Positions 16,058-43,000 of a stretch of 64,000 nucleotides of DNA are shown piece after piece (within the stretch, counting starts at the first letter, position 1; each line of letters opens with the position of its first letter). The position numbers and the translations under genes were made by a program. Source of the DNA: Bugula neritina (taxonomy: Eukaryota > Animalia > Bryozoa); assembly GCA_964035545.1 (NCBI GenBank), contig OZ037766.1, forward strand, positions 31,052,773-31,116,772, in the 5' to 3' direction. The notes under the pieces are model-generated. The model saw only the letters and a program-made list of their open reading frames with translations, searched no databases and had not been told where the DNA came from.

Positions 16058-19000
16058 ATGGATGGTCAGCAACAGTTTCTCAAACCCGTGAGTATAATAA
16101 TAAAAAAATGACTTATTTATAGTTCATGTTTGTATTTATTAATTTAAAGTTCAATTAGGAATTTATCGTTGGATTTGATGGTCATAAGACACTAAGTAGC
16201 CTGCTGTAGCAGTCCAACAATTATTCAAAAATGTTTTGAAGAGTATGGCAGATGCAAGATAATATTCAATAACATAAGTCATTTTAGTTTGGTTTATTTA
16301 TATAAAGTACAAGTACAATTATGGTCATTTCATTTTTTCACTGTGCACACACTAAAATTCCCCCAACCAAATATCTGGTATTTATCTAAACTCTTGATAA
16401 GTTTTGCCTAAATATAAGTAGCTATGCCTTGTTCCAAAAGCACATTTGGTATTTTAAAAATGCAATTTTAATTTTGATAATGATGTCATGTATTGACAAA
16501 GTGGACTGTGGGAACAATACTCTACTTTTTTAGTTTCAGTATGTTTTATTGCTAAATTTATGTAATTCAAAAACTAATGGAGCAGAGTGAGTTGATAAAT
16601 AACATATCCTCTCCTTTTGAGCTCCTCAACATATTTAACAAAGACACTTAATATGTACATTATAACTTTATAGTCTTGAGTTGGAATAATTTCCCCAAAC
16701 AGGTTTTAGCTGGTTATCTGATACTGGCGTAGGGTTTTTGTAGTTTCTACAGTAGTCATTGCTTGCTGGGGTATTGTTCTGCTTTGTAATGGTTAGCTAG
16801 AAAGCATACTCTGTATGTTTGTGTAGTAATAGTGGCTGAAAGTTGAATTCTCAAAGTGACGTATCTCTCATGTAATTAACTACTTGTCAAAAAAAACTGG
16901 AAGTGTTTCTATACATACGAATAATTAAACATTGTTTAATTGATATTAGAGGTGTATGCACACTCAGAATTCTTAGTGGACTTTTTAGTAATCATAAGTT
17001 GAGTTTGTGTTTGTTGTTTAATTAAATCATTCTTATAGGACAATAGAATTCATGGTTCACTGCCTTGTAATGAATATACGCACTGGCTTGTTTATTTTTT
17101 ATAAGCACGCATTCAAATGATTATTCTGAACAAAAGAGTCGTCATAAAGCTATATGCAAATTGTAAATGATTACATAAATGCAGTATACAAATATGCAAC
17201 AGCTAGTTGTGACTCAGAACTCCTCCTAACTTCGATGGCCTCTTAATTTATTCGTTGAGGAAATTTTATTGTACCATTTCGTGGTTTACAGATGCTTTCT
17301 GAGAATATGTTAAGCATAATATGATTAGATGATATCCAGTTTTCTATGATGGGCAAAGTTGGTCTACTCTAGTAATTATTATTATTACATATCTTGTGAT
17401 ACTCTCAGGGTTTTCTTTTTCATCAAATTTACTTGGGAATTGAATGATTACTAATTTTACCATAAAAATGGAGTAGTTCAAATTGTTCTACGTATTATGT
17501 CTATCATCTGCACATAAGAAATATTTTTTTAACTTTAATTTGAAAGAGCAGACTTGCTTATCAGTTACTCTATAAAGCTACTCTGATGTTTTTTAGTTTG
17601 GTGAAAGTCTGATTTCTTCTTAAATCTAGACTCATGGCGTCATTAGATGTACTGCTCTAAGTGTTAAAACTGTTTATAGCCTTGCTTTAATTATGGTCAC
17701 TTGTATATTTATTTCATTATATACCATGAGCATATGTATTTGGTAGAATGAACATACATATGTTACAAGCATAATATATACTGTGAGCTTAAATTTAATG
17801 AACATATAATATACCATGTGCATATATTGTATTGTATATATTATGAGCGTGTATATCATAAGCATATGTACTTTCAAACTCAAACATGGCAACAGCTAAG
17901 TATCTATTTGAATAGTAACAAGTTTTTATGGCAATATTGAATTTCTACTTTCCCTATTTTTACCCCTTATTAATGCTCTATAATATATAGTTTTCAATTG
18001 TATCATATAAATAAAGGTAAAGACTTCCTTGAATTTAACACAAAAGAATAAAGCACACTGGCTTTGTGTAGCCTGCTAGTACAAACAGAATAGCCTATGT
18101 ATTATAAGTAGTGTTGTACACAAGCCATTACAAGATATTTGAAATGATTCTAATACTAATTACCTCCCATCATAGTTACATGAAGAAATAGCTGGGTGTA
18201 GCTCTTCAAACCCAACTCAGGAATTTTAATCATAAATCATACTGCATAACCTCTACTTTATGCTGGTCTTCCTGCTTTCTATTTCAACTACAAAGTTGAT
18301 GTGTTTGATGTTTAAAGTTGTTATTAAGCTATGAGTAGATGGTACCACGTGTAATTGTTTATTGGCAGCACTTGATGGTGGTTTATTGGCAGCAAGGCAG
18401 GACAGCTGCAGTTTGTCAACTTTGAATGTTATGTAATCTTCGGTGGCTCTCTCATTTAGACTTGGTTCTTTTCTCATGAGTTTTCTCTGTCTGGCTGTAA
18501 GTCAGCCAGCTGCTAGTTTCTGCAGAGTCTGCATTATTCTCTTAGATCCCAGCTGTCTTTAGGTGAAATTGTTTCCTCCATAAGAAAATGAATTAAATCA
18601 TAAATGATTGTGGTGTTTAGGTTAACATTGCAGGACTCTGGAATTTTGAACTAGTGGAGAGACCCTCTATGGTTTAACGTAAAAAGCAATGCCAATGGTT
18701 ACCAAGTTGTAAAAATTAGCTTTTCTGATATAATTGTTTTTAAGATTTTAACTTTACATCTATAAATAGCTATTATCTTCATGAAGTAATGACCTAGCAG
18801 TTATGCTGTGTCATACAGTAACGTGTTAGCCTTGTTGTTACTCTGTTGCTATGGTGATGTGTAACTACACCTTAATATGGGTGGACCTAATCACCTGTGC
18901 TTAAAAATGTCATTTGATTTTTATGACATCCTTTATACTGAACAGGCTAACGCAGTAACTCGAACCAGTGGCAGACTGGGTCTGACATGTACTGTAGGTA

Positions 19001-22000
19001 CATGCAGGTGTACTCCTCACCAGTTGGCTGCCGGCAGCATTATTGGCAGCTTCTTCTAGCTGACATTTTGACTCGTAGGTTTTGACAATTCATTGTTGGG
19101 AGTTGTCCTCTCATTGTTCCTAAGTATGAAAAAAGGTCCCATGCTGATGTCTGTATATCTGATAATGACCGAATTTCACCTTTGGTTTAGGATTAGAGTG
19201 GTTAATATTTGTAGCAAGCCATCAGAATTATTCTATAAGCAGGTTGGAGGTAACTAATTGCAGCAGTTTGTGGGTCTCCAGTTTAGGTTGTAGTTTTGTG
19301 CCCCAACTTCAAACTTGAGACCCACAAACTGCTGCACTCAGTCACCCCTAACTCGGAGCTGCTTATAGAACAACTCAAACCACCAGGCTATCCTCTTAGT
19401 GAGTTTTTACCATATCTGAGATGGTTGCCAATAAATTTTATCTAGAGTTGGAATAACTTGATAAGTGACCAGTGTGAATAATAGATTATACACTGGAGAC
19501 AGGTGGATAACTGAACATGTGAATTGATTTCAGGTGCAGCATGTGCCCTTCTACGTGAAAAGACCAATCACCATTGACGCATCCTCCCACCCTCAACTCT
19601 TTGCTTATGCTAATGGAGGTAACAAACCAGCATCTTACAGCGTGGACCTATCACACCCCAGGTGAGTTATCTCAGCCAATAAGGAGGCAGCTTTGATAGA
19701 CACGGTGTTTAGAAGAGTTCAGAAGTTGCTGACCTTCTGTTGTCTGTCTCAACGTATAATTTACAAGTCTCAGACGTGTCAAGCTATTGATAGGTTCATT
19801 ATCTTTGTTATTTGAGATGTGTGCTACTCACTTCTAGATAATATCACACATGAGATTGTCTACCTGCTTTGCCTAATGCCAAGATAATGATAGTTTATGA
19901 AAATTTCACTTTCTTCGAAGAAATTTTGAACTATTCTCCTCATAAAAGGATAAGGCAGGTGAAATGTCTAATAAAAAGTAAAAAACTAGCAGAGAAAAGG
20001 CTTTAAATTATTGTTTAAAGCCTGCCCCACCCAATTTTCAAGTTAGTTTGGTATCATAAACAAGAATACTTTATATATTCCCTAATGAACGCTTAGTTCC
20101 AGCAGGATGTTAGACGTGAGCATATTTTCTAGGTTTGGCCGACCTAAGCAAACTGACCAACTATCTGAGCCGATCAACAGAGCTCAGAGTAAAAGCCTTA
20201 GAGATGTGTTTGAAAAGGCAATACTGAGAGGGGACGTGGCTATATATTCTCCTGGTATTTCCTTGAATACTTTGTTACATTCTCAGTCTATTTGTCTCAT
20301 AATATCTTGTGCTGTATTTTAGTAAATAGTTCACTTGTTTCCTACTTTATTGAAGATGAGGACAGTGGAGTGATGCGAAACCCCAGCTTCATCACAGCCA
20401 GTCTTCCTAGACCAGACAAGCATAAACAGAAGTCTGCCACAATTGGTGGTGACAACTACATGCATATAGGTGAGTGTAATATGTGTTAACGCATGCATGT
20501 AGGTGAGTATAATATGTGTCAACACATGCATGTAGGTGAGTATAATATGTGTCAACACATGCATGTAGGTGAGTATAATATGTGTCAACACATGCATGTA
20601 GGTGAGTATAATATGTGTCAACACATGCATGTAGGTGAGTGTAAATTTTGTACTTTCTACAACATATACTCTTTTGCAGTATTTAGTTTGACTTTTGTAT
20701 GACATTTTTTATTAAGTCAGTTCGAGCTTTATTTGAGAACTAAGTAGGCTTTGGGATACCATGCTGACACCTGGTATCTTATGCTGACACCTGGTATCAT
20801 ATGCTGATACCTGGTATCTTATGCTGACACCTGGTATCATATGCTGACACCTGGTATCATATGCTGACACCTGGTATCACATGCTGATACCTGGTATCAT
20901 ATGCTGACACCTGGTATCTTATGCTGACACCTGGTATCATATGCTGACACCTGGTATCATATGCTGACACCTGGTATCATATGCTGATACCTGGTATCAT
21001 ATGCTGATACCTGGTATCTTATGCTGACACCTGGTATCACATGCTGACACCTGGTATCTTATGCTGACACCTGGTATCTTATGCTGATACCTGGTATCTT
21101 ATGCTGATACCTGGTATCTTATGCTGATACCTGGTATCTTATGCTGACACCTGGTATCACATGCTGACACCTGGTATCTTATGCTGACACCTGGTATCTT
21201 ATGCTGACACCTGGTATCTTATGCTGATACCTGCAGGTAAAAGTGGTTACCGGAAGAGAAATGACTACTTTGTCGACAGCTCCAGCGACTCCGACAGCGA
21301 CAGTGGGAGGGGAGGGCAGCACAATGACGCGTACGTTGATGACGCAAGCAGCACTGTTTCCGACGAGATGTTCAAGTCTACCAGTGAAGGGCCCGCTCAT
21401 TCTACTGGTTCGATACTACTGTAGAACTTAGTCTACTTGTATTGTAATATTTATCTCTGGTGTAATATTTCTGGTGTAATATTTGTGGGTAGTGGATGTA
21501 GTGTACTATATGCAGTGTAATAATGTATTGTAGCATTTACAGTGTAATGTTTGTGGTAGAACATTACACCCTGTTTAGGTATGACTACTTAGGTATGATA
21601 GGAAAGTTTACTTAACTTGAGTGGACATGGCTTTTTCTACACTCTCAAACTCTACTCTACATTGTAGAAACACAAAGACCCAAACGGGTATCACTACAAG
21701 TTGATATTGTGTGTAACTGCATTTACATTATATAACGTTTCTTTTTCTTCTATACGTTATTACTCTGTTATGTTCTAATACACCCACCTTTATGCTATGT
21801 AATCTATACTGAATAACATTTACATTTATATCTGTTTGGAAAGAAGTAGATGATAAAAAGCTGTTACAGTGTAGCAGTAGTTCTGGAAAAGCTGGTTAAA
21901 TATATCAGCTGTAGCAACGATTTCTATTTTTCAAGTTTCGAATATTTTTTTATAAAAACTTACTTTGATAATAAAATTTTGAGATTGTCAATTATATAGT

Positions 22001-25000
22001 TACATAACACCATTGTTTGTCTCTCATTTTTCTCTATAAATGCTAGTTGAATCCTTATTCGCCAGTTTGTGAAAGTATTTTTTAATTAAGACTCTTTTGT
22101 AGAAGAGGAAGAGTTTCACGTGCAGCCACTGCCCCACCTTCTCGATGTGGAAGTGGGTCACCAGGCCGGGCGGTCAACTCTGGGGGGTTTCTTCAAACCC
22201 AAGTACCGTGACTATCCCCGTAACAATGTGCACCGCAGCTCTGAGCGAGAGCATAAGGAAACTATAGACTCCGGAACCAGTCGTAATTTCCGAAACCTAC
22301 ACCGAAACTCTATTTCTCTAAACAAGGGGGATAACTCCGTACACAGAGATGGGAGTATGTTAACACATAGACAAGAACCAAGTAGTGACAGTGGTAGGTT
22401 ACCACGAACTAAGTTACTTATGGGAGAAAGGACTCAGACGGACTTAGTGCCCAATATTGGTACAGACTGGGACAGTATAGCCGTTGAAACTCAGGGTAGT
22501 GCTAGACAGGGTCGGATTGAAAGGCGGGACAGTAGGGGTGGCAGTCACAGCCCTCGCATGAGTCATAACAAATATTTACCGAAGAAAAGGCGGAATTCAA
22601 GGCCTCGATCTCCCCGATTAACCAGTCAAGACACAGCTTTCAATGGTTAGTCACTAAAGATTAGTATCTCCTTCTACATGCAGTTCTCACGTCATGTTTA
22701 TAGGAATGTATATCATTTTCATTGTCACTCACTTGGCAAGAAGAGTTAACTTGGTAAGACATGGCTGGCATCTTTGCGTTTCTCTTAGACATAATTTGTT
22801 ATGCCCAATGAGCAGTGATATGTGATACGCATCTCTGTTCTTCACTGGACTCAATCTTCTTATTAATTGTTTCCATAGCAACCGTATTTTAGTCCAACAG
22901 CAACACACCCATAGCCTGGGTTTCTTGCCTATAGCTAGTAACGTAAGTTTGGATTGCGTTTAAAGGTCCCCTTACTAAAATAGCTTTTGGCAGTTGAAAG
23001 CCAGCGGTGGCTGTGTGATTGGCTGACCACCTCACTTCACTAGCTATCATAAGTTTGTGTGACTTGAGTTGTATCTTCTGTGTAGATCTAGACAGTATTG
23101 AGGTGCTCAGCCCCGAGATTCAGAGACGACAAAGTCAACCTTTAGCTGTACCGCAACATCAGCGTGAGTAGTAGTACTAGTAGTAGTAGTAGCAGTAGTA
23201 GTAGCAGTAGTAGTACTAGTAGTAGTAGTAGTACTAGTGGTAGTAGCGGTAGTAGTAGTACTAGTGGTAGTAGTACTAGCGGTAGTTCTAGCGGTAGTAA
23301 TACTGGCGGTAGTAGTAGTAGTAGTAGTACTAGTAGTAGTAGTAGTAGTAATAGTTGTAGTAGCAGCAGCAGTAGTAGTAGTAGTACTAGCGGTAGTAGT
23401 AGTAGTAGTACTTATAATAACTAATAACCTGCTACATTGTTCAGGTCAAGGACGTCTCACAGCCGAGGGAACTCCCTTGGAACAGATGGAGTTGGAAGAC
23501 CCGCCGTGGATGAAGGCAGAGATCAGAGAGAGGAGACGTCGGAGGAATAAGAAGATCTGTGTAGCGGTGGTCATTCTCACTCTGCTGGGGGTTGTGGCTG
23601 GGTTGGCGGTCCTCCTCTCTCAGGTTCTAGTTCCTAAGGCTGAGGTGTCCAGCACTTCCTTACAGCCTGGTGAGTCATCAGCGTTTTGTTAACTGCAATT
23701 TTATTGGTCATTTGTGTGCTAGCTTTATTGTAATTGGTTATTGTCATGCGTTTTGATAGACTGTGGTTGTGTTAACTACATCTGGATTGGGTAATGAAAT
23801 GTGAACTAATATTCTATTGGTTGTTCTTTTGTTGCCGTTTCTCTGCTATTCACTCACAAACCTGTGCACTGCTTATGACAATGTGGAATATTTAGTTGGT
23901 TTTCTCAACACTTTTCTGGAATCTTCACGTTAATATTTGGTAGTTTATTCTGGCTGCTGATTCTTGGAGAATATGTTTTAATCAAATAATCCAGTAAAAT
24001 GGTTGTTTCTAGTATATTTCACTGTTCCTCTACTGAAGGTAGCAATAAGGCCTCTTCAAAACTTATCTAGTTGATAAGTTATGCTATTACCTAGACTTAC
24101 CACCAGAGCAGTTATTAGAAACTTTGCTATTTTGGCTCTCTGCATGGCATAGAATTGTTTTGCAATACTGTTGGGTTATTTTGTAGTGTCAGTGATACAA
24201 ACCACAACCCCAGTTCTATCCACTACAACCGCATCCACTCTTGAAACTCAAAATCTAAGTAAGTGCCAACCAAGTATGATCATGCAAGCAATTGTTAGAC
24301 TTCCTAGTAAGCTAAGCAAACTAATATCTTTGTTTTAGACACTAAATGTTATTTCTCAGATAAAAACTTGCCAATATTGTATGCCTTATTTAACACGAAT
24401 GTCAGTTCTTATTCTATAATGCCGTTATTTTGGGAAAATGGCTGATGTCAGCTTAGAGTATTGGTGATTCCAGTGATTTAGAATATTGAGTATTCCAACT
24501 TCAATCCTACTGCCTTTTGGCACTGTATCTCTTATCCACATGTTGTTATTTTTCCACATATCATTAGGTTATTGGGTGTGCACGGGTTACACCCATTTAG
24601 TAATCATTTACCTAGATGATAATGTGAACTCTAGTTTATGCTAAGTATACCACTGTGTCAGTGAAGCATTAAGCGTAAACATTGATAATTTATGTTCCTT
24701 TTTCCTTTCAATTAAGTCTAAGCTTAGTAGTCTTACACAGTATAAGGAGTAATAATGGAATTTGTTACATCATAGATGTAAAAAATAAAACATTTTCAAA
24801 TGGAGCCTAAGCTTACTCTTCTCATGGTGTCAATGGAACGAATCAAAGTGAAAGTTGGCATTATTTTAGGTTTTTATTCGTTTTATTTTTGGAGTTGTTG
24901 TTATTGCTATCATAAATCTCTCTTAGTTTAGATTCAATATTTTTAATTCTGTGCCATCTTCAAGACTATCTAGGTATTTTAATTCGGGATATTTTCTACA

Positions 25001-28000
25001 TTGGAGTTGCCCTATTTTATAAAACAAGTATTGCTAAATAGTCATACTGCTACTTTTCAATAGTTGTTCGAATGTGTTTGTAATTTCTAGCTCTGACATT
25101 CGACGGCTCCATGAGAGTACTGAATAAGGAGTTTGAAGTAGCTCTACAAAATCTCAGTAGCCCACAATCTATAACCCTGGCAAATGACTTTTGTGGCACG
25201 GTATGTTATCCACTCTAACCTAATGTAAATGTAAACCTTGACCTTGCTTAGAGTGCTTATACTGCATAGCTGTGGCTTCTCTCTTTCAGATGAAGAATGT
25301 CTTCACACTGAATGCCTCCAACAATGACTTCACATATGACAACTGCAGTGTGACCAAGTTCATGTGAGTCACAACTCCTACTTTCTGTGTGTCTGCTGCA
25401 GCCTTTCTATGTTGATAACATCATCAGTACAGTTTTGTCTTTTGCTGGCATAATTCCTGCTATTCAAACGCTATGCTAGGTTGGTGGGAGCTTTGGTTAC
25501 TAGTATTGATTGTAGGCGCTATTTCGTGTGGGTTGAAGAGCTTTTATATCCACTGATTTTCTTATAATCATAGCCCAACTTCTTTAGTCGGGGAGAAAAT
25601 TTAGGCATCAGAAAAACACAAAAAGCCTAAATTTTTCTTACCAATTGTAAATAACTTTTATATAGTTTTGGGTTACAGCTTTTGCAATCTAGGTTTTGGA
25701 CAATTGCTTGTCAAAGAGACTCTTTTCAAATCTCCGCAATTTTGAGCCGTTGCAATCTTAAAGCTACCTGAGTGGATAAAAATGTGTGTTGTCATAAAAT
25801 TTAAAGCTTCACCTGTCTTCGATATTATATTTTTTTCTAAAATTCGTTATGATTGGGAGGTTTCATGCTGATTGGCTGCGAACTCTTAATACGATTAGCA
25901 CCAAACTCGCAATGACTGCTTTTCATCACCACGTAAATTCGCTAGAACCATCTCTGGGTGAGTATTTCTAGCTCTTTTGATCACTTCTACTCTTTGTGAA
26001 TGTGTAAATGTTGCTAGTAACTTCTTAGTGCAGTAGTTGGCTGTAGCCAGAGTCAATGTTTTAGTTATTACTTGTATTTAAACTCAGTCTAGATTCTCAC
26101 AGTTGTGTGCTGTTGTTTTTTTAGAAATGGCAGTGTGATAATAAAGTTTGAACTGTTGCTGTTGACTTCAGGGTTGCCTTCTACAAACTATAGTGATCCG
26201 ATGGACATTATAACTATGGGACACTTTTGCCGCACTAATGTGAAGGACAATTCTTCTTGCTTGTTTTATTATTCAGATTTTGAGCTAACCCTTTTCAACA
26301 CTTCATATGTCACATCATATAACAAATCTACTTTCCCAGCTTTGGTATCATCCAGCATGTCTCCCATTGCACCTCTCTTTTCACTGAATGCTTCAACTTC
26401 AACGCCAGCTCCATCTGCCCCTTCAGCTCCCTCAAGCACTTCTGTCAAATCCCATTTGATCAGCTCAATAGAACGAGTGACTATCACTCCAAAACATTCT
26501 AAAGCTTCTACTGAAAAATCTACCAATGTTCTCTCTACAAGGAAACAGTCAATTAATTCTTCATTTAAGTCTCCCAGTGAGCCAGTCAGCTTTTCAAGTT
26601 TGAATTTTCCAGTTACATCACCTAGCCTAAATTCAATTAAACCATCAACCTTCTCTGCCGTCTTATCCTCTCAGTCACTGTCAACTATGACACCTCCTAC
26701 ATTTCCACTGTCCTCACCTATACCTGTGTCCATGTCACACCCAAAATTTTCATTTGCTTCTGTTTTTCCTAAAACAACACCAAAACCAGTTGATTTACAT
26801 ATTTCATTTCCTACTCACCAAGCATCATCCCCCCACGATTTAGCATCATCTACCACAACACCACCCACTGCGAAATCCAAGACCGCTGATGCTGCCTTTT
26901 CAGTATCAACAAATTTGAAACACCTCAAACCAACGCCTAGTGTATCACTCACAACAAAACCACCTGCCAAACCAATTGATCGGCTTACCATCAGAATTTC
27001 CAGCCCTACACAAAAGCCAATTCAGTCTGGCAAATCAGTTGTTTTTCCGTCCACCAAATCTTCAAACTCTAAAGATAAGAACTATAATTATAAAACTGGA
27101 ATTGATCATTGGCCAATTGCTACTCCTCCATGGAAACGATATGACTCATATTTTCATTAATTAGCTTGACCAAATCTCACCATATATGACATTAATATAT
27201 ATTTTACTTTGTGCTTACTGTTCAGGTATTTTGTGACAATTTAGTAGATTTATTCAGTTTTAATATCTGTTTAGAAAATTATTAGTTTTTTTGTGTTTTT
27301 AAATTAACAATTTAAAATGTTTTTTTTTTGATTATTGTGATACTTATCAAGATAATTACCTTCTGTTGATCACTCAACAACTGTTTTTGTTTTTATATTA
27401 ATAAACTCTCAACACTCAACCATTGCTTCTTGTCTTGCTGCTGGGAACTGGCTTACATGTTGTGCTGGATGTTACACTGTTTGTATTCTACTAAACTTCC
27501 TAAATTGCTTTCTAACTAGCAAGGGAGCGGATGAATTCCTCGCTGTAATATAATTAAAAGAAAACAACTAAATTATGCAGGTAAGATTATCGCTGCAGTT
27601 TATGTTGGTCGTGTAAAATTACTTGTAATAATTTGGTTAAGCTCCCATTATTTCAAGCCCCTATTTTACTTGCTGTTTTGTAGGGAGGGCAGTATTGTCA
27701 TAGATTTCAACTTGAACATCATTGCCAGAGTGAAGGGAGCAAGTACATCTAACTCTGTTGGAATAGGTGCTGTTGATAAGGTAGATCAAGCCAGAAAAGT
27801 TAATCAAATAAAGCAATTTACCAACAAAGAGTGGGCAAAACCGAATCCCGGTGGCGAGAGCTGGGTGGTTGATAACGTGAGACTGGAGTTGAACACGACT
27901 GAAAGTGATAATGAGCAGCACATTGACAAGTCACTGAATGTAACTGAGTTACCAACTTCTAAAAAACTGAAGCTAACCGTTACTCCTGCACCAACTACAA

Positions 28001-31000
28001 ACCCTACCACTACTACTGTTTCAACTACCACTACCCCTATGCCTACTACCACTACTAGAGTTCCCTCTACAACAACATCAACTAAAGCCACTGTCAGCTC
28101 AACTACTATGGTGGCTACCACCCGTAGATCAACGACAACAACTACGTTCTTTACTACAACGACTGAATTGCAAACCACAACAACTTTATCGCCTGCCACA
28201 ACAACTGCATTGCCAACTACGACAACCATGTCACCAGCCACAACACCAACCACAACACCAAATACAACGCCAACCACAACACTAACCACAACAACTGCAT
28301 TGCCAACCACAACAACTGCATTATCAAGCAGGCCTCCATCAAGATCAGCTTCCACAGCAGTGCCAGACAGTGATTCTGTTGCATCAGAAGAAGTGAACAC
28401 TGAAGGTGTTATTCCATTTACTTCTTCCAGGGCAACAGCTAGCACATCAGTAGCCACACCTAAACCAGTAACTCAAAGCCTTACTACTTCAAGCAACGGT
28501 AGTTCTGAATGCTTTATACATTTCTTAACGGAAAATTGTAACACTGCTTATTATCAATGTGGCACCACTAACGACCAAATACTATGCAGGAAGGGTATGG
28601 CATTGACATTAGAACTCACTCCATTTCCTTGGAACGATTCAGCCTGTACTATTCCAATAAACATATCTGCAGATAGCTCGACTTCTCTGAACGACAGTTG
28701 TCCTATTGAACGACAGTTTTTGCGTTACAATTGCCCTAGTCTCTTACAGATGGCGACACTACCTATGAACAACCTCGACTACATACCAGATTGTTGCCCA
28801 GTTGACTATATATTTGACAAGAATAGTAATACTTGCGAAGAGTGCATAGATTGTAGCTCAGCTGAATCTGAAGATGATACTGCATAGAAAGTGTCGTATA
28901 TTTCTTGTGTAGAAATCTTCAATCTAACTTGTTGAACTGGTAGAATATTTATTCAATATTAAGTTGCCCATTTTTGAAATGTTAAATTTCTGACTTCAGA
29001 TTTCTATATTTATCAAAGTTAGAGGTTTTCATTATCATACAAATAACATACTGTATAATCATATTTTTAATCCGTCCTTCAAAACTACTTATCTTCTCAT
29101 CATGCTAACATTTATTTATGGTGACAGAATATTTTGTTAATGTTATGGTGAAAGTCACATATTTATATAACATATTTTGCGCATGATACATATCGATATA
29201 ATGCAATTGTTGGTAATGGTAACATGTAATTGCGTTAGGCATTCAGTATTTAGCCTTTACTCTTTATTTTTCACAATAATTTATCATGGTTATCTCAAGT
29301 GTGTTATTATTAAAAATTTTCTCCCTTTAAAATCGTAAAAACATCGCACAATTTATGACATAAGGTAGCTTATATTTATTATAGCATTCCAAATAATTCA
29401 ATATTAGCAAATACATAGAGTTTACACTTCTTAATATTGCATTTGTTAGTCAGGTAGATTTTCTATGTTCTGTTCAACTATATTTGTAAAATTAACACAC
29501 TTTGTAAGAACGCATAACAACACTTAAGCTAGTATTTTTAGCTTATTTTTTGTTATTAAAGAAACGTAAATTTTTATGGTGATTTTTAAAGCATCTTTGC
29601 TGAAATTTTTAATTTATTCTTTATGTGTAATAATACCTTGAAAACATATTTTATAGCGCAATAAATTGATGAGTGTTTAAATGTAATTGTGTCATGTTTT
29701 GTGAATAATTTTTTTCCAAGTTTTGAAAATTCGGCGGTAATATCTTCACCAACTGTGTTTATCAACACATATCACTTTCTAGGAACGAGCGTTATGCCTA
29801 TTTGGTGGCTACGTAAGATTCATAAGCAGAAAATATAAAATAAACAAAAAGCAAAAGTACATCGTATATTTTTACAATTAATTTCTTATTTACTTCATCA
29901 TATATTGGCATACCAAGCTCCCAACCTAGCTTAGCATATCTGCGAAATCATACATCTTTTGTATTAAATGTTGATGACTGTATATGTGGAATGCGGTGTA
30001 TCATGTAGAAATGGCAGCATCGTGATAGAATTCAGGTTAGAGTTTATGGCAGCACCCAACACTTCTCTATCCACTGAGTGCGAGTCAGGTGCCGACAACT
30101 GCACCGACAGTTGGACAGAAGAGAGTGTAACAAATCATTTGAAAACACATTTTGGTAAGTGGCAGCAATAGACCATGTAAAACTCAGCCAATCAGCGAAG
30201 TGTACCAGGTCAATGTCTTACCATTGTAACTGATATAAAATTCTGCAAGTTCAATTGCAAAATGCATGCTTCTAAAAGCTAGTTGTGCAACTTTTTTTTT
30301 CATGCATTATTTAATTTCATATCTTAAATTGATGACTCTTGAAATGATTTTTTAAAATGTCTAAATTAAGTATTTATAAAACGCAATTAAAAATTGCATG
30401 TCTAGAAAAATGACCTGGTACACTTTTGCAACTTAAGGCCAATTATTACATAAGGGTCATTTTACTTAATTTAGTACACACTCGAAATCTTCAGTTTTTA
30501 GCTATTTTTCACAATTTAGCTGGTAATGAGCATGGTTTTTTGGCCAAAACTAGTTAAGCACCAATAAATACACCTAAATAATCGAAGTTCTTTTTAATTT
30601 TGTTTCATTTCCCACGTTTTTCCCTAATTATTCAGCTAGTTTTGGTTACGGACCGTTACGGTTTTTTCGTAACGTCCGTGCATATAGAATATTAAGTGCA
30701 TATGACAATGACCTGTGCTTTAATGTTGGGGAATCCCCTCCCAGCCTTTGCTGTTATGCGTAATTAAAACCAGCACATAAAAATACCATGTATAGTAAAT
30801 TTCAATGGATTTGGAGCAAACTTTAATGTTAGGTCATAATTTGCTGGTGTGTACTAAATGAAGTAAACTGACCCATAACTGCCAGCTTAGTAGTTATTTG
30901 TTGTTGCAGCTTGAATGGGTTATTGTTTAGCATTGGAAGCTTGCAGTAAACATCTGTGAATTTGGTACATGACTTTGATTGGCTGGTTTTTGAATGGCCC

Positions 31001-34000
31001 TTTAGTATATGCATCTGGATGGCTGGGTAGTGTAGACCCGCCTACATCTAGCTAATGTACAGTAGCCAATCCACAGTAGTATTACGAAATTTCTGTTTAA
31101 CAAATGAAATATTCTGGTCATTTGTTTTGTACTTTACAATAGTAAATATTCTATTCAACTAGAATTTTATTGTATGTAAGCCATGGGAACTACTAAGAGG
31201 TTAAATCAACCACCCATGCTGGTAATATTGTAGCTCACAGTCATAGCAAGTCCACACCATATAAATATACACATAAGCTATTATGTGCAGCTTATGAATG
31301 CTGAAATGACCCAATTTCTTACTTTCAATTTGAAAAAAATTGTATTACATATTCTGCCACTTCTGCACCAGGAACTTGTTTTCCTTTTAAATTTTGAAAA
31401 TAGTAGTCAGTTTCTATAGCAGTCAACATCCACAATAAACAACGTAAGCTTTCAAATAAACTATTAATATATGAAATATTAGTGTGGAAACAATGTAATT
31501 TATTCATTGCTATGATGAAAAATTACAAGAATATTATATAAAAGCTAGATATAGATTTCTAGTAAAATGGCACAGGTAAAAATAACACATTTTTACTTCA
31601 AATTCTAAATTTCATCAGTCACCAATGGTGGCTGTAGATTACAGAGAGCACAGCAGACTATCACAATCTTGTCTAATAGAGGTGCCAACACCAAGTTCAC
31701 ACCTCCAGGACCATTTAAAATATTGAACTCCTTTATTCTTTTGATTGCTCTTTCGACATGGATTCGAAGGTTAGCAATCAACTTTGTTTGCAGTAACTGC
31801 ATTTTAGTCATTTGCAAATGGCCTCTTTTCCCAGGTGGTATGGCCAACTTGGCTCCAGCGCCTATAAGTTCTTCTTCAATAAGAAAGCCTCTATCTGCCA
31901 TGACCACATCATCTGGGTTTATGAAGTCTAAGAACCCAGAGTCATTAACTACACACTTGTCTGAGGCTCTACCTCCCATTCCATGCGAAATAAAGCAGAT
32001 AGTGCCCCTGGGTGTAATTGCAACCAAATACTTAATGGTGTTGATATTTTTATACTTACTCCATGTTAAATATTGAGCCAGCTTTGATTGAGGTTTGCAA
32101 ATGAATATTTCTGTGTAGTCTATAATGCACCTAATGTTAGCATATTGGCTTTGAAAGCTCAGAGGGATGTTCTTGTTGGAAAAACTAATAGATTGTTCAG
32201 TTCTCTTGCTAAAATATCTAATGTGTTTTTGAAGGTTTTGCTTGCTAGCAATCTAGAGATATAAAAAAGGCCAGCAAGTATTTGAAACTGTAAACCTTGA
32301 CGCAGCTTCATCAAAGCCAATAAAAGTTTATCTTGTCTTGTTAACTTTTTTCTGAGAGTGAGAACTTTCATCTTCAGACATATAAATCTAAATATAGTAA
32401 ATAAAGAATGAAAATTAAATTATGATTCAAATTATATGTATGTGCTAAATAAATTTTGTGCTTAGTTTGTATTCATTCAGCAGTTTTTACCCTCTGGTAA
32501 GTAGCTTCAGTTATATTTGCAACAACTATGAAGTTCAAGAACTGCTAGCTGAAGGCTTGACCCAATATATCACCATCCAAACAGAATGTAATGTGTGTCA
32601 ACATGTGTTACGTAATGCTGTAACAGTACATAATAAGCTAGTTGTATGAATACATGCTTTGAATGAAGTCATGAGTTTAAACAAATAGTGTTGACCAACA
32701 ATTATTACTTCATTTTATAATTATACTATAACTAATTCAAACCCATATTATTTCTAGAATAGCATTTAATAATGTTTGTGAATGAGTGAAACTAGTAACA
32801 AGTGTAAACCATTTTAGTTTTAAACACTGAGTTAGTTTCAGCTAAAAATTAGATTAGGAGGCCACTTTTGATAAGCTTTAAAATAACCAAGGAAAATTTA
32901 AGTCAAAACAATTTACTTTTTCTGGAGAAAGTGAGTCAATTTGTCCACAAATAAAAGACTGCTGCTTGTTTAAATAAAACCCTAAACTAAATAAGTCGAA
33001 GCATACAGATGACCACTGTGGTATTTATGAATATCTTACATAAAACAACATCTTTAATAAAAAATGTATGAATGATGCACTCACACTGCAACAAATTTAA
33101 TTAAAATGACAGTTTTACTACACATCAAATTTAATCAATGTAGAAATTTTAGCATAGTGAAACTTGCATTGTTTATTTGTAATAAACCATAGTCTATCTT
33201 TGCAATAAGAAAATCATAATTTTTACCTTGCTAAAAAATAGTATAGAGAACGTGTAGGTATTCCAGTATAGAATTTAGTTTGCTCATCTGTAGTGGTGAA
33301 AGTTTTAAAAACTTACTTTTTCAATAGTTGCTTTTTGTTTAAAGGTGGAACTTTTTGAGCCTTTTCTTCCAACTTTTGATTTTCGTCTATCAATAGAATG
33401 TGCAGATCTTTTTTTTGAGTAGTTGATGGTTCTGGTAACTCAGTTACTTCTGATGAAGTCTGACTATGAGGATGGCTGTCAGATGAGTTCTGTTGCTCTA
33501 TATCAGCTGACTCTGTTGAAGACGTTTTTGTTCGCTTCCTTCACATGTTTCATTAAAACCACTGTTTTTTGTGCGTCTTACATTATATGTTTTAGTGCGT
33601 TAGTAACCCAAATGAAAGATTGGAGTTGGATTTTGCTCAGTGGGCTGACCATCCTTATGATTATGATAGTCTGCTATGCTCTCTGTAATCTACAGCCACC
33701 ATTGGTGACTGATGAAATTTAGAATTTGAAGTAAAAATGTGTTATTTTTACCTGTGCCAATTTATAGAAATCTATATCTAGCTTTTATATAATATTCTTG
33801 TAATTTTTCATCATAGCAAGAACTAAATTACATTGTTTCCACACTAATATTTCATATATTTATAGTTTATTTGAAAGCTTACGTTGTTTATTGTGGATGC
33901 AGTTGACTGCTGCAGAAACTGACTACTATTTTCAAATTTTAAAAGGAAAACAAATTCTTGGTGCAGAAGTGGCAGAATATGTAATACAATTTTTTTCAAA

Positions 34001-37000
34001 TTGAAAGTAAGAAATTGGGTCATTTCAGCATTCATAAGCTGCACATAATAGCTTATGTGTATATTTATATGGTGTGGACTTGCTATGACTGTGAGCAACA
34101 ATATTACTAGCATGGGTGGTTGATTTAACCTCTTAGTAGTTCCCATGGCTTACATACAATAAAATTCTAGTTGAATAGAATATTTACTATTGTAGAGTAC
34201 AAAACAAATGACTAGAATATTTCATTTGTTAAACAGAAATTTTGTAATACTACTGTGGATTGGCTACTGTACATTATCTAGATGTAGGCGGGTCTACACT
34301 ACCCAGCCATTCAGATGCATATACTAAAGGGCCATTCAAAAACCAGCCAATCAAAGTCATGTACCAAATTCACAGATGTTTACTGCAAGCTTCCAAAGCT
34401 AAACAATAACCCATTCAAGCTGCAACAACAAATAACTACTAAGCTGGCAGTTATGTAATAATTGGCCTTAAGTTGCAAAAGTGTACCAGGTCATTTTTCT
34501 AGACATGAAATTTTTAATTGCGTTTTTATAAACACTTAATTTAGACATTTTAAAAAATCATTTCAAGAGTCATCAATTTAAGATATGAAATTAAATAATG
34601 CATGAAAAAAAAGTTGCACAACTAGCTTTTAGAAGCATGCATTTTGCAATTGAACTTGCAGAATTTTATATCAGTTACAATGGTAAGACATCGACCTGGT
34701 ACACTTCGCTGATTGGCTGAGTTTTACATGGTCTATTGGAGTAATAGTAGCAGTTTTGTGAAAGAATGTGTGTATGCGTGTTCGAACATATGTATTTGGT
34801 GTGTGTACACACACACACACACACAATATGTTATCTAGATAAATTATATAACTTGTGATTAGTGTTGGGAAAGTTTCAAAAGTCTGTCAGCTGTAATAAT
34901 TCTATAGGAGCTCATGTTGTCAACTTGATAATTAGTTTGTCTGTTAACTTTGCAGAGAAAGAGTCTCTTAAGGATGGAAACAACCTAACCTTTGAGAAGG
35001 CGAGTCTGAGTGTAGAGAGAAAGAGTCCTGGGAGAGCACCGACTAAGCCGTCTGTAACCACCAACTCTTCCGTGCCTACAGTAACAGATAGAGCTAATAC
35101 TACTACCACTACAGTAGCCACTACAGTAGCTACTACATCTACTCAGTCCGTTACCACAACACTTACCACACCTTCAACAACTACCTCTAATGCACCATCT
35201 ACCACTACTACTTTATTAGAAACCACAGAAAAACCCACTGGTACGGAAAATATAGCATTCTTGAGTTTTTGTACTGTGCAATGTGATTTCCTTGCTTAGT
35301 GTTTTTTGTACAGATTTATGAAGGAGGTTTAATCACACAGCTAAGTCACCAAATCTATAGCATCCAGATATTAATATTTTATTGTCAATTCTGTCACAAT
35401 TTCATTAACGAGTGTGTACACCTTGATGAGAGTTATCGGTTATTTTGCATTTTTATAAAGGCTAGTGGTGATAAAACCTCTTTTTTCTTAGTTTTATCAA
35501 GTTAAACACAAAAACATGTGATTGGGTTTTGCTAAGCTTCCTGTTGCCATGTAAGCTGTAGGTTTAATTTTGATTTAGTAAGTAGTAGGTAACATATTCT
35601 GTTCAGGTACATATTGAACAGGATAGAAAAAAGTGGTTGGAAATTGAAAGCTGATGGCAAATTTTGTTTGCTTATTAGTCATTGGCCAGTTTAATATTAC
35701 TACCATAGACTAGTGAAGTTACCATATATTTGAAGTTGCAGGGCTGGCCCTCTTCATACCCTCAATCAACAAGTTTGTAGCTTCAATGGAACTCTATGCT
35801 ATAGCTTCTACCTTTTGCTCTGAAGCGGTTTTCAATTTGCTGTCAGCTAAATTTATCACAGTTGTATTTCAGTAGTTGAATTCTCAACTTGTTGCAGCTA
35901 ATTCTGTGATGCTTCTAATCAACATTTCAGTTACTACCAGGGAGATCTCCATGAGCAGTTCAGCACAGACTCTGACTGACACTCACTCATCCACTCTGAA
36001 CTCTGTCACTTCTACTACTATGACCTCTACTTCTACCTCACCTGTCTTTAACAGTTTTGGTACCACTGGTGGTACTACTAGTGGTGGTACTACTGCTACT
36101 ACCACTGTAGATCTCACTACTCATTATCCTGCCAGTCCTACTCCCACTACTATCAGTGCAACCACTACTACCTCTACTCTCAGTCCGACTACTATTCCCA
36201 CTACTGCTCCCACTACTAGTACCGCTACTACTACTCCCACTACTAGTACCGCTACTACTACTCCCACTACTAGTACCGCTACTACTACTCCCACTACTAG
36301 TACCGCTACTACTACTCCCACTACTAGTACTACTACTATTCCCGACACTACTGCTACTACAACTACCACTACTCCCACTTATACTCTCTCTACTACTACT
36401 AGTACTACTACAACTACTACTACTGTTGCTACTACTACTCCCACTACTACTACTACTACCACTACTACTCCCACTACTACTACTACTCCCACTACTCCCA
36501 CTACTACTCCCACTACTACTCCCACTACTACTACTACTCCCACTACTACTACTCCCACTACTACTACTACTACTCCTACTACTACCACTACTCCCACTAC
36601 TACCACTCCTATGACCACCACTACTACTACTACTCCCACAACTACTTCTACTACTACCAGTGCTCCTGCTACTACTACACTAACAGGTTAGAAAGAGCTG
36701 TTTTATTTTTCTGCTGGTGTGGGGTCATGGTTGAGGGTGCTCTTCCTTATCTGGTATCAGAGCGGTACCGTCTACTGTACGGCTCTCTTACCATTGCATA
36801 CCTCCATTTCATTATTTCATAGAGGTTTGGTTTGTTTCCAAATAACCTTTGGTTTAGAGGGGAAAATTGCATGATTTTGCCTTGGCCTGGACTCCAATCA
36901 CAACTAAGTGAATAGTGTTCAATAAGTGAGTAATTTACAGACTGGCTTTACATCGGTATCTTCTTGAGCTATCACCCAACCTTCAACTATTCTTTCCCGT

Positions 37001-40000
37001 TTCGATCATTTTCTTATTTGATTATGGAGACGGTATAGTCAGCTTCAACTGGTAGTTTCATACATTATTTTGTTAGCCAAGAACAATTTATACAGATTCA
37101 CAGTGCATTTCAATTCAAAGCAGTTTCAAGCTGTAAGTGTATGAAACTGTGGTTTTTTTATGCAGAGTTTTTATACCCCCTAAACACACTTTGCCGTAAA
37201 GTAGACTGTAAAGTAAAATGTCAGCCATTTTTAATGTATCCGGACCGAAGTTTTCAAAGTCTGCTATTGGGTACGATATGACACCTCATTGGACATTTAT
37301 ATTCAATGAGTTGATGAGAACGTCTCATTGTTCAATAGAAGTCTGACACAATTTTTTTTAATCCATCAGTGCTTGATCCTGACGTACCGTAACTTCGTAC
37401 GGTCAGCTCGGACATTGTGAAAAATGTCTGCCATTTGACGATACCGTTGACGTTACGCAAAGTGTGTCTAGGGGGCAAGTATGTATATGTACTAAATTCC
37501 TAGCTGAGAGTATTTCTTACAGCTTTAAAACCTTGAGACCGCTCTTTCTTTTCATAGAGTATGTGACATGCTTCTACTAATATCACTGTTCGCACCTACT
37601 TTCTTCCATTTTTATAAGAGTATATACCATAATACAACCTAGAAAATAGTTCTACACAATGGCAAGCAATGTTTTTACTCTTGCGTAGGGTGTGCTGCCG
37701 ATGGTAAGATAAACGCTGGTATGTACGAAGACGAGGAAAATTGTACTAGCTACTACGTTTGCTATGATGACATAGGTCCTAGAACTAATAACTGCTTACC
37801 AGGCACTATGTACAAAAAGGAGACAGAACATGCTGGCGGATGCGTAACGTAAGTGGCTGCTCTGTTACATGTGATATATCTTTGTCGGGAAGTGCCAACC
37901 AATGAAAATATCTTGACAAGGGTCTGTTTGGTGCTGTTACAATTACTCATCTTGCACACAATGGCAGGTGTCTGCCAGGTGACAGTTACTTACCGTGTAC
38001 CCACAATGGCAGGTGTCTGCCAGGTGACAATTACTCACCATGTACCCACAATGGCAGGTGTCTGTCATGTGACAATTATTTACCATGTACCCAGAATGAC
38101 AAATGACAGTTTCTCATTCTGCAAACAGTGACAAGTGTCTGTTCATGTGACAGGCACTTGTCATTATCTGTCACTTGACGAGTGTCTGTCATGGTCATGT
38201 GACACTAGTGTAAGCACAGTGACAGGTGTCTTTCTGCTGTCATGACAGTTACTTGTGTCTATCACGTGACTTACCCACCATAAAGTCGCAAGTTAATATA
38301 TGTGTTTGGACTTATTAAAATATTTAATATTTTTACTTAACCTTCACTAATTTGTACAACAATGTGTCATTCTAGAACTTGCTGGTATCTGTTTGTTCAT
38401 GTCTCATTCCATTTGAATCTTATGACATATTAGATTTGTCTTCTCATTTTAGCTGTGATACTAAAGTTTGCCCCACATGCATCCCCCTTTCTACAGAATA
38501 TGAGGTGAGACTCACTACTAACGACAAGATAAATATGATTTCAATTTATACTCTTTTCTTTGCTCACAATATTATATACGCAGCATGTCACATGGTGTTG
38601 AACTTTACTTGTATGGTTAGATGTAATATATACTCTACAATGTCGGTAAGTTGTCTTGCTCTTCTACTCTACCTTCCATTTGTTTGTCTCCGCCCACTGT
38701 AAGCTTACTATATACTGCAGTCTATGTCTCCGCCCACTGTGAGCTCACTATATACTGCAGTCTATGTCTCCGCCCACTGTGAGCTTACTATATACTGCAG
38801 TCTATGTCTCCGCCCACTGTAAGCTTACTATATACTACAGTCTATGTCTCCGCCCACTGTGAGCTTACTATATACTGCAGTCTATGTCTCCGCCCACTGT
38901 GAGCTTACTATATACTGCAGTCTATGTCTCCGCCCACTGTGAGCTAACTATATACTGCAGTCTATGTCTCCGCCCACTGTGAGCTTACTATATACTGCAG
39001 TCTATGTCTCCGCCCACTGTAAGCTTACTATATACTGCAGTCTATGTCTCCTCCCACTGTGAGCTTACTGTATACTGCAGTCTATGTCTCCGCCCACTGT
39101 AAGCTCACTATATACTGCAGTCTATGTCTCCGCCCACTGTAAGCTTACTATATACTGCAGTCTATGTCTCCGCCCACTGTGAGCTTACTATATACTGCAG
39201 TCTATGTCTCCGCCCACTGTGAGCTCACTATATACTGCAGTCTATGTCTCCGCCCACTGTAAGCTTACTATATACTGCAGTCTATGTCTCCGCCCACTGT
39301 AAGCTCACTATATACTGCAGTCTATGTCTCCGCCCACTGTAAGCTCACTATATACTGCAGTCTATGTCTCCGCCCACTGTGAGCTTACTATATACTGCAG
39401 TCTATGTCTCCGCCCACTGTGAGCTTACTATATACTGCAGTCTATGTCTCCGCCCACTGTGAGCTAACTATATACTGCAGTCTATGTCTCCGCCCACTGT
39501 AAGCTTACTATATACTGCAGTCTATGTCTCCGCCCACTGTGAGCTTACTATATACTGCAGTTTATGTCTCCGCCCACTGTGAGCTTACTATATACTGCAG
39601 TCTATGTCTCCGCCCACTGTAAGCTCACTATATACTGCAGTCTATGTCTCCGCTCACTGTGAGCTTACTATATACTGCAGTCTATGTCTCCGCCCACTGT
39701 AAGCTTACTATATACTGCAGTCTATGTCTCCGCCCACTGTAAGCTCACTATATACTACAGTCTATGTCTCCGCCCACTGTAAGCTCACTATATACTGCAG
39801 TCTATGTCTCCGCCCACTGTGAGCTTACTATATACTGCAGTCTATGTCTCCGCCCACTGTGAGCTTACTATATACTGCAGTCTATGTCTCCGCCCACTGT
39901 AAGCTTACTATATACTGCAGTCTATGTCTCCGCCCACTGTGAGCTTACTATATACTGCAGTCTATGTCTCCGCCCACTGTAAGCTCACTATATACTGCAG

Positions 40001-43000
40001 TCTATGTCTCCGCCCACTGTGAGCTTACTATATACTGCAGTCTATGTCTCCGCCCACTGTAAGCTCACTATATACTGCAGTCTATGTCTCCGCCCACTGT
40101 AAGCTTACTATATACTACAGTCTATGTCTCCGCCCACTGTAAGCTCACTATATACTACAGTCTATGTCTCCGCCCACTGTGAGCTTACTATATACTGCAG
40201 TCTATGTCTCCGCCCACTGTGAGCTAACTATATACTGCAGTCTATGTCTCCGCCCACTGTAAGCTTACTATATACTGCAGTCTATGTCTCCGCCCACTGT
40301 AAGCTCACTATATACTGCAGTCTATGTCTCCGCCCACTGTGAGCTTACTATATACTGCAGTCTATGTCTCCGCCCACTGTGAGCTTACTATATACTGCAG
40401 TCTATGTCTCCGCCCACTGTAAGCTTACTATATACTGCAGTCTATGTCTCCGCCCACTGTAAGCTCACTATATACTGCAGTCTATGTCTCCGCCCACTGT
40501 AAGCTTACTATATACTACAGTCTATGTCTCCGCCCACTGTAAGCTCACTATATACTGCAGTCTATGTCTCCGCCCACTGTGAGCTTACTATATACTGCAG
40601 TTTATGTCTCCGCCCACTGTGAGCTCACTATATACTGCAGTCTATGTCTCCGCCCACTGTAAGCTCACTATATACTGCAGTCTATGTCTCCGCCCACTGT
40701 GAGCTCACTATATACTGCAGTCTATGTCTCCGCCCACTGTAAGCTTACTATATACTGCAGTCTATGTCTCCGCCCACTGTAAGCTTACTGTATACTGCAG
40801 TCTATGTCTCCGCCCACTGTAAGCTCACTATATACTACAGTCTATGTCTCCGCCCACTGTGAGCTTACTATATACTGCAGTCTATGTCTCCTCCCACTGT
40901 GAGCTTACTATATACTGCAGTCTATGTCTCCGCCCACTGTAAGCTCACTATATACTGCAGTCTATGTCTCCGCCCACTGTGAGCTTACTATACACTGTAG
41001 TCTATGTCTCCGCCCACTGTGTTCTGATCCATTCTGGAATGTTACTTGCCTGTGGCGCGTAGTGCTGAGGTATTCTCTGCATCGTGAAGGTGTTATCTGC
41101 AATACAATTACTGCAGATAGTTGTTACAGGTGCTATAGCTTGCAGGTGTGCTAGGTAGTATATTATGTAGTGTATGCTAGGTAGTATATGATGTAGTGTA
41201 TGCTAGGTAGTATATTATATAATGCTGCTAGGTAATATATTATATAATTTACATCAGCCTCATTGTCAAACTGGTTGGCAAGGGTTACTACAGCGATAGT
41301 GGCTATCTGTAGAAAATTATATTATGCAGTATTTAGCAACTGTGTAGTGTGCAGCTACGTAGTTTATACAGGTGCTACACGCTATCTGTTGCTATTCACT
41401 CAATTACTACTGTATCTTCACACAGTCAACATTCTCAGCATGAATATGTGTTCTGGAGTTGCCTTCTTCCTGCTGTGGAAAAATAAGAAAACGGTTTTCT
41501 AAGATTTGTGGCAATTTTTCTGTAATTACTTTTTATTAGTGATGGAGATGCATACATGCATTATAATAATGTGTTTGGAGGACTTAGTGTTTATTTAGTG
41601 TGTAGATCAAACCTCAAATTCGGTACAAAATTACGCTCCAACAGCTTTTCTAGATTGTTTGTGATTGGGTGAATCATCAGTCTATATGGCGCTCAAGGCT
41701 TATTGATTTACTCGTATAATCAATAATATCTTGTTGGTGGTTTAACTCTGACTAATGGCTCCTTTGGCTCAACTACCAACTCAATTTAGAATGGGTTCCT
41801 GAAATATATTTAAAGCAACTGGAAACCAAAGCAACATTCTTAGGTTCTTCAGTGCACAGGCTTGAAAATTAGTTTTTGAAAAATGTAGGCTAACCAACTT
41901 CAGTTTTATCAGTCATCAGTGTTTACCTTTCCTGACATTAGCAATTATTATCTCTGAGAGAAGACAACTTCATTATAGTTGTGCTCCCAGCTGTATGCAT
42001 AATATACTTATAATAATGAGTTTGGAAGTGTAGTGGCTGTGTTGATAAATAATGTCATCATATGTTACTATAGTGACCAGTAAACAAGGTGTATCCAGGT
42101 AATGCCGTGCTCACTAATACTGCAATGCTTTCACCACATTGTGTGATAGATGTGAGATTTTTCTGCATTATCTAATCCTTGCAATATCCTAATATATACT
42201 TGATGTGTAACTGTGTAACTACGTGAATCCAGTGCCGTATAATTTCACTTCTAACTAGTTCTGCTAGGCAGCTGCCACTCCTAACACATATTATTTGCTG
42301 CCTGAATTCTTCACCGCATCTTACACTCTGCACTTTATTTAAATTTCCTATTCCGTTACTTTACACTTCTGTATCAATAGACTGGTGTCACCACAGACAG
42401 GTTTTTTGTGAATTAAACAGGCTTTCTTTACGTTTTTATCTAAATAACTTGAATTTTCCTAACTAAGACAGAATTCAATAAGTTGTTGTGAAACTCAATC
42501 AAATTATGAGTTGTTGTTGAATCTAGTTTTGTAGTTTTACAAGTTGTTGGCAAAATTTGGGAGTTGTCTTGTGTTGAAATAAAATTATTATACATTGTAA
42601 ATTGAAATACTATAAATGATTAATACAACTGAAAGCATAATTTCTTAATTTTTTGAAAACTGTAATCTCACTGGAATGACAACTCCAATATTAATTGTAC
42701 TGTGATGTTATTTTACTGTTAAACATAAGAATGTAGTTTTTATCTGTGTGCTCTTCACCAAATGTGACACATCATGTGTTTTCATTGTAGATTTGCGCTA
42801 CAAGTTACTTTTTATGTTTGTGTTTCCTCCTATCTGTGTGTACCTGAAATAGTTTTTTATTTCTGAGTATGTGACTGTGCTTTAGTTATTCAGTTTGGTG
42901 CTACTTTTCACTTGGTTACTGCACGCTTACTTTGCACTATGCTGCCTGCGTCTGTATGCTCTTCTTTGATTAAATCATTTAATGTAACAATTTGCAGAGT

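Follow-up and report, generated by a model that had tools for sequence, protein, structure and literature searches.

The window analysed here, 64,000 nucleotides of the genome of the bryozoan Bugula neritina (contig OZ037766.1, positions 31,052,773 to 31,116,772), holds a gene that probably encodes a type II membrane SEA mucin with a 3' tandem cassette cluster, in which splicing branches at the ancestral last intron of the SEA domain and the products would cleave themselves. Its constant exons, which supply the N-terminal half of the SEA domain (N-half), are spliced to either of two alternative cassettes, B or C; a third, cassette A, lies between the common donor and cassette B. Each cassette opens with its own C-terminal half of the domain (C-half).

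One donor facing three SEA C-halves

Read from the ATG at 16058, the constant part comprises eleven exons of about 555 codons in all and encodes a cytoplasmic region of about 430 residues, a single transmembrane helix preceded by a basic run, then a short stalk and the SEA N-half. Its last exon, 25290-25363, ends in a phase-2 donor after position 25363 (AT/gtgagt). The sequence of the 64-kb window then offers AG acceptors directly 5' of 26125 (A), 27684 (B) and 30009 (C), all in the frame of the donor, and in this frame the cassettes start xGSVII, xGSIVI and xGSIVI, respectively, with the general form x-G-S-(V/I)-(V/I)-I-x-F. The pattern of an AG followed by a phase-2 xGS(I/V)(I/V/L)(I/V/L/M)xF occurs three times in the 64 kb and in none of 20 shuffles. 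An initial annotation made from the letters alone had described this layout of one phase-2 donor and three phase-2 acceptors, with the splice point two residues before the cleavage site. Coordinates, phases and motif starts all hold, as do the separate stops of A and B (27160 and 28887) and the path of C through six more exons to two CBM_14 matches. It had also spoken of mutually exclusive exons; rather than internal exons of this kind, A and B are alternative last exons and C opens a seven-exon cassette.

Each cassette has its own stop, and candidate poly(A) signals (AATAAA) lie at 27400, 29660, 29839 and 44247. Because A and B would end the transcript, the choice of cassette would be coupled to that of the poly(A) site. 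The cassette B transcript reaches about 29650-29835, where its contigs end, although contigs are too coarse for mapping poly(A) cleavage sites. From exon lengths, the products would measure about 900 (A), 956 (B) and 1368 (C) residues. The two peritrophin-A-type domains of cassette C (Pfam PF01607, CBM_14) fall on either side of the Pfam cut-off, one above it with 25 bits and the other below it with 19.9 bits (E 8e-4). No protease domain was found in any cassette in Pfam searches of the Bugula forms and of those of a second bryozoan, Watersipora subatra.

RNA evidence for cassette choice

Contigs from four RNA runs of four studies (X1, X3, X4 and X11) were aligned to positions 24175-30170. The runs come from another B. 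neritina lineage, and their RNA status is presumed, yet they show clean GT-AG joints. The joints between constant exons are present in all four. The junction from the donor to B (25363>27684) occurs in runs X4 and X11. Runs X1 and X11 show the joint to C (25363>30009), for which X3 and X4 have a loose end of 17 nt; run X11 contains both. The onward splice of exon C to 34956 likewise appears as a loose end.

An old cluster with changing copy number

The same gene is found in Watersipora subatra (XP_067944013-19). There the phase-2 donor is shared and five acceptors lie downstream of it, ordered A, B1, B2, B3, C, and four of the five cassettes are used by RefSeq isoforms with an identical N-terminal part: X5 takes B1, X4 takes B2, X2 takes B3, and X1, X3, X6 and X7 take C. 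The comparison of orthologues proposed at the outset thus recovers the arrangement in a second genus. The Watersipora C path also leads to two chitin-binding-type domains, which both Bugula domains match. It varies further in RefSeq: X3 skips a stalk exon, and X6 and X7 are short forms that stop after the first of the chitin-binding domains. Six cytoplasmic exons found a match in the orthologue, at 47-91% identity. Within the cytoplasmic region (16058-23163), blocks are 66-91% identical between the two genera, with no known Pfam domain and no match outside these two bryozoans. One search among 8000 candidates of 0.55-1.75 times the length found no orthologue beyond them.

The head of cassette B deserves separate mention. 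It is a 125-residue domain with 12 invariant Cys (28507-28884), single in Bugula and threefold in Watersipora, where B1-B3 match it with E-values of 1e-15 to 7e-23. No Pfam family matched it. Modelled alone, it reached a predicted local distance difference test (pLDDT) score of 33, and comparison with CBM14 gave weak leads (Atlas 0.81-0.84; hhalign probability 5%).

The window was also compared with a second B. neritina assembly from a diverged lineage, about 7% different in nucleotides here. The cassette arrangement is repeated in that assembly and in two metagenome contigs, while two metagenome scans for contigs with cassette A or the SEA N-half gave no matches. Ratios of non-synonymous to synonymous substitution (dN/dS) are 0.39 for cassette B and 0.13 for cassette C, and the first N-half exon (25091-25200) is identical in 36 of 36 residues despite seven synonymous changes. 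As an aside, an in-frame stretch of 24 nt close to the beginning of exon C is missing from one metagenome contig when compared with two other copies of the locus, which could be an allele or an assembly slip.

This is an old, conserved cluster whose copy number has changed. It would have arisen by tandem duplication of an exon with a SEA C-half before the split of Bugula and Watersipora, followed by two more duplications of B in Watersipora or by losses in Bugula. The shared cassette starts show duplicated origin and would also be expected if the cassettes were leftovers of tandemly copied genes, or artefacts of assembly. That explanation is highly improbable, given the same arrangement in the second assembly, the two metagenome contigs and Watersipora, and given that the upstream SEA N-half exon, like cassette B, is single-copy in the genome; for B and C it is refuted by the RNA joints from one donor to two acceptors.

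The SEA domain and its motif

Searches and folding of whole isoforms used database isoforms, and for Bugula A and C the exons were examined individually. Pfam SEA (PF01390) scores Bugula isoform B at 27.4 bits against a cut-off of 26.4, and the Watersipora B1, B2, B3 and C isoforms at 45-56 bits. An AlphaFold model of B (pLDDT 79) places the Gly-Ser at the turn between strands 2 and 3. Foldseek searches with this model return the SEA domains of TMPRSS6 and MUC16 on top (E 1e-4 to 1e-3), and Z-scores to SEA structures are 8.1-8.6, although one transposase of similar fold ties. The model supports a ferredoxin-like alpha/beta SEA fold for isoform B. The expectation that profile and structure would recover SEA was therefore borne out for B. 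That the cassette starts are diverged SEA C-halves is supported by a profile of non-bryozoan SEA C-halves, against which the eight cassette starts of the two genera beat nearly all of about 200 shuffles.

Known cleaved SEA domains carry GSVVV, GSVIV or GSVIA, the fifth residue being Ala in matriptase (PMC2958558), and their motif has been summarised as GSxxV (PMC9478142). Gly-Ser is kept in all eight cassettes, which otherwise share about 20% identity, whereas it has been lost from some other SEA relatives. In Watersipora C the motif is GSVIV, as in enteropeptidase. Cleaved halves of SEA domains remain bound and separate under force (PMC10556640). In the bryozoan protein the Cys residues of each half are paired within that half, so no disulfide is expected between the two subunits.

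An ancestral intron as branch point

The intron beside the Gly-Ser is not peculiar to this gene. At the other SEA loci of the genome, six of six motif-carrying exons start at the same place and in the same phase; three of these are near-identical repeats, so that three loci are represented. A gene at G000:C2:12931756-12963137 contains several near-identical tandem SEA repeats, each with this intron before Gly-Ser. The human TMPRSS6 SEA domain is encoded by exons 3-5 (PMC2958558), with introns 3 and 4 following c.363 and c.431 (PMC12841354). Aligned to the solved TMPRSS6 structure, with residue numbering inferred from Tyr141, these introns fall at the same places, and in the same phases, as the two SEA introns of the bryozoan gene. 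The comparison indicates that the intron is an ancestral SEA feature, which was co-opted as a branch point and did not arise for the sake of the switch.

A splice site whose position evolved to match that of the cleavage site was therefore considered and rejected. The splice point does lie where the initial annotation put it, but the intron position is an ancestral one, shared with human TMPRSS6 and other SEA genes of this genome, so the closeness of splice and cleavage sites does not on its own point to selection for a swappable subunit. The novelty is the use of an old SEA intron as a branch point. In a type II protein everything after the cut is C-terminal, and duplicating the exon at the cut thus replaces the entire post-cleavage subunit.

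Cleavage and cassette A weighed

Several points weigh against the proposal of three live cassettes with self-cleaving products. Cleavage at Gly-Ser is likely, with the motif as its basis, and the fifth residue of the Bugula motifs GSVII and GSIVI is Ile rather than Val or Ala, while Watersipora B3 reads GSILM. Among the cassettes the structure model covers B alone, and the C-half profile scores depend largely on the first strand. Moreover, the junction from the donor to A (25363>26125) is absent from the contigs of the four RNA runs, contigs being prone to lose rare forms, and none of the Watersipora RefSeq isoforms X1-X7 uses cassette A.

The same splicing might operate on an uncleaved SEA domain, giving ordinary single-chain isoforms with alternative C-termini that branch at an old intron. 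The ancestral intron position would suit this explanation, as would the reliance of the cleavage argument on the motif, and some SEA domains are not cleaved (PMC9478142). We nevertheless consider it rather unlikely, since none of the eight cassettes of the two genera departs from F-x-x-G-S-(V/I), whose Phe stands three positions ahead of the Gly, and this motif agrees with those known to be cleaved.

A different alternative is that only B and C are live, A being spliced seldom if at all, or forming a nested gene of its own with a single exon, as in the NCBI model KAF6020503.1. This model and KAF6020502.1, the B isoform, are the nearest database proteins, both from B. neritina. Besides the missing junction and isoform, this alternative could draw on the contigs over cassette A, which are shallow and run unspliced across its acceptor in runs X1 and X3. 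An X4 contig whose start lies 17 nt upstream of acceptor A might have concealed a junction; it was discounted, as it aligns with the intron from its first base. The A joint missing from contigs does not, however, show its absence, because contigs drop rare forms. Between the two B. neritina lineages the acceptor, frame and stop of A are all kept; its dN/dS is 0.44-0.52 (p<0.01), falling to 0.26 over the first 70 codons, and five of its five indels are multiples of three, against 2/21 in flanking non-coding DNA. The 25 codons before the Met of the nested model are conserved and in frame, and by eye this internal Met has no evident signal peptide. The Watersipora A exon matches that of Bugula at 39% over 79 residues (E 2e-8), with acceptor, phase and SEA-type start kept; it ends in a six-Cys tail absent from Bugula A. 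A dead or independent cassette A is thus quite improbable, and we strongly infer that A is also spliced to the constant exons. Both genera conserve A, yet its junction was seen in neither, and a stage-restricted or rare isoform is the simplest reading of this. The constant anchor with three swappable SEA C-halves of the initial annotation accordingly stands for B and C, whose predicted junctions were found in RNA, and finds a parallel in the four cassettes used in Watersipora RefSeq, whereas its A junction was not seen.

Control of cassette choice

A predicted long-range RNA duplex joins the intron after the common donor to a segment upstream of acceptor C (Table 1). Its stability was reached by none of 40 shuffles, and it is kept in both B. 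neritina lineages. With A and B in the loop of such a duplex, the donor would come to lie close to acceptor C, which may favour C. Selector pairings for A and B were at chance (reached by 22/40 and 24/40 shuffles, respectively), and no pairing stood out near the Watersipora acceptors. A Dscam-like set with one docking site and competing selectors for all three cassettes was rejected, as pairing exceeds chance for C only. The intron 25364-26124 differs by 4.9% between the lineages, compared with 12-17% at synonymous sites of the cassettes, and this conservation suggests splicing control elements beyond the one duplex.

Features of the locus

Table 1. Features of the SEA gene in the window. Donor 21407 and acceptor 23086 are best-fit assignments.
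Feature	Coordinates	Strand	Evidence
Seven constant exons, cytoplasmic region of ~400 residues	16058-16087, 19534-19661, 20133-20254, 20356-20469, 21237-21407, 22103-22645, 23086-23163	+	Open frame, GT-AG ends
Constant exon, basic stretch then one transmembrane helix (putative type II topology)	23445-23669	+	Sequence; dN/dS 0.09 between lineages; donor joined to 24187 in RNA loose ends
Constant short Thr-rich stalk exon	24187-24258	+	Joint 24258>25091 in 4/4 RNA runs
SEA N-half exon 1 (strand 1 and helix), phase-0 end	25091-25200	+	Pfam SEA positions 2-33; joint to 25290 in 4/4 runs
SEA N-half exon 2, ending at the shared phase-2 donor two residues before Gly-Ser	25290-25363	+	Sequence; RNA joints; position and phase of human TMPRSS6 intron 4 (c.431)
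Intronic arm of predicted long-range RNA duplex	25468-25498	+	-40 kcal/mol with 29911-29945
Cassette A: last exon, SEA C-half and Ser/Thr/Pro mucin tail, 344 codons	26125-27160	+	Purifying selection; orthologous Watersipora exon; stop at 27160
Cassette B: last exon, SEA C-half, Thr stalk and 12-Cys head, 400 codons	27684-28887	+	Junction in X4, X11; NCBI model KAF6020502.1
Partner arm of RNA duplex, 64-98 nt upstream of acceptor C	29911-29945	+	-40 kcal/mol with 25468-25498
Cassette C first exon, SEA C-half, 146 nt, spliced on to 34956	30009-30154	+	RNA joints; dN/dS 0.13
Cassette C, six further GT-AG exons, one open frame, stop at 44225	34956-35240, 35931-36686, 37689-37848, 38453-38504, 43042-43477, 43621-44225	+	Thr stalks, two CBM_14

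The intron after exon C holds a DNA transposon of about 4.6 kb (30166-34738) that is not in the other B. neritina lineage; it has long terminal inverted repeats with nested arms, 93-99% complementary, and a DDE_Tnp_4 frame on the minus strand (31608-32252). Intronic minisatellite arrays lie inside the gene at 38690-41020, 20755-21232 and 20470-20640, with units by eye of about 40, 20 and 34 nt. Upstream, on the minus strand (6711-14235), two long ankyrin-repeat frames stand on either side of caspase exons (Peptidase_C14 at 11547-11831).

Proposed mechanism

In the mechanism we propose, each cassette would complete the SEA fold by adding its final strands and helix, as modelled for B. By analogy with MUC1, matriptase and enteropeptidase, the folded domain would cut itself between Gly and Ser. 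The resulting protein would consist of two non-covalently associated subunits, an almost invariant anchor and a sheddable outer part encoded by the cassette. Its likely role would be that of a glycocalyx or cuticle tether of epithelia, in which C would bind chitin and A and B would form other surface coats in other tissues or stages. More tentatively, the gene may stand for a bryozoan family of surface receptors cleaved into two subunits, in which an anchor with a 430-residue cytoplasmic region and regulated 3' splicing would present three to five unrelated force-sheddable subunits (bare mucin, 12-Cys head, chitin binder), tying the epithelium to stage-specific matrices. In the most speculative extension of this receptor idea, anchors left after shedding might pick up another C-half at the cell surface.

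Comparison with known systems

The splicing logic is known. In 3' tandem cassette clusters, such as those of Drosophila PGRP-LC, CG42235 and pipe, duplicated 3' cassettes are spliced to common exons in a manner coupled to alternative polyadenylation, and intronic RNA pairing can favour the distal cassette; PGRP-LC isoforms share cytoplasmic and transmembrane domains and vary in the ectodomain (PMC6191721). Like PGRP-LC, the bryozoan gene splices duplicated 3' cassettes to one common donor. The cassettes of PGRP-LC are paralogous recognition domains, whereas here only the SEA C-half is paralogous and the remainder unrelated. The bryozoan branch, moreover, lies inside a probably self-cleaving domain, with one pairing (to C) and no competing selectors.

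For the setting inside a SEA domain we found no description: no alternative SEA C-halves or Bugula SEA proteins appeared in the literature searched, most subscription papers being outside its coverage, and no report of alternative C-halves was found for matriptase, enteropeptidase, TMPRSS6 or TMPRSS11. These type II transmembrane serine proteases share with the bryozoan protein a cytoplasmic N-terminus, a transmembrane segment and then a SEA domain with Gly-Ser. TMPRSS6, the best structural match, also shares the three-exon SEA layout with phase 0 and then phase 2. Unlike them, the bryozoan protein is without CUB, LDLRA and protease domains, and its cytoplasmic region is much longer. The gene offers a natural experiment, as a single fixed SEA N-half would fold with three to five different C-halves that share about 20% identity. 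This could be used to test which residues govern self-cleavage and how strongly the two halves are held together without a covalent bond. For bryozoan biology it provides a candidate link from the epithelium to the chitinous cuticle, together with an unnamed 12-Cys domain.

As in MUC1, MUC3/12/17, MUC16 and IMPG1/2, the SEA domain is combined with Ser/Thr/Pro-rich stalks in a probable cleaved non-covalent heterodimer with a sheddable mucin subunit. Transmembrane SEA mucins are type I and hence shed their N-terminal part, while the SEA C-half stays with the anchor. In the bryozoan protein this topology is reversed, and 3' splicing can therefore replace the whole shed subunit; an old intron beside the cleavage site opens this route to duplication of 3' exons. 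Cassette C, with its Thr-rich stalks and two peritrophin-A-type domains, resembles the peritrophins and insect intestinal mucins. Unlike secreted peritrophins, the C form would be anchored in the membrane via its SEA domain, and one of its CBM14 domains lies under the Pfam cut-off.

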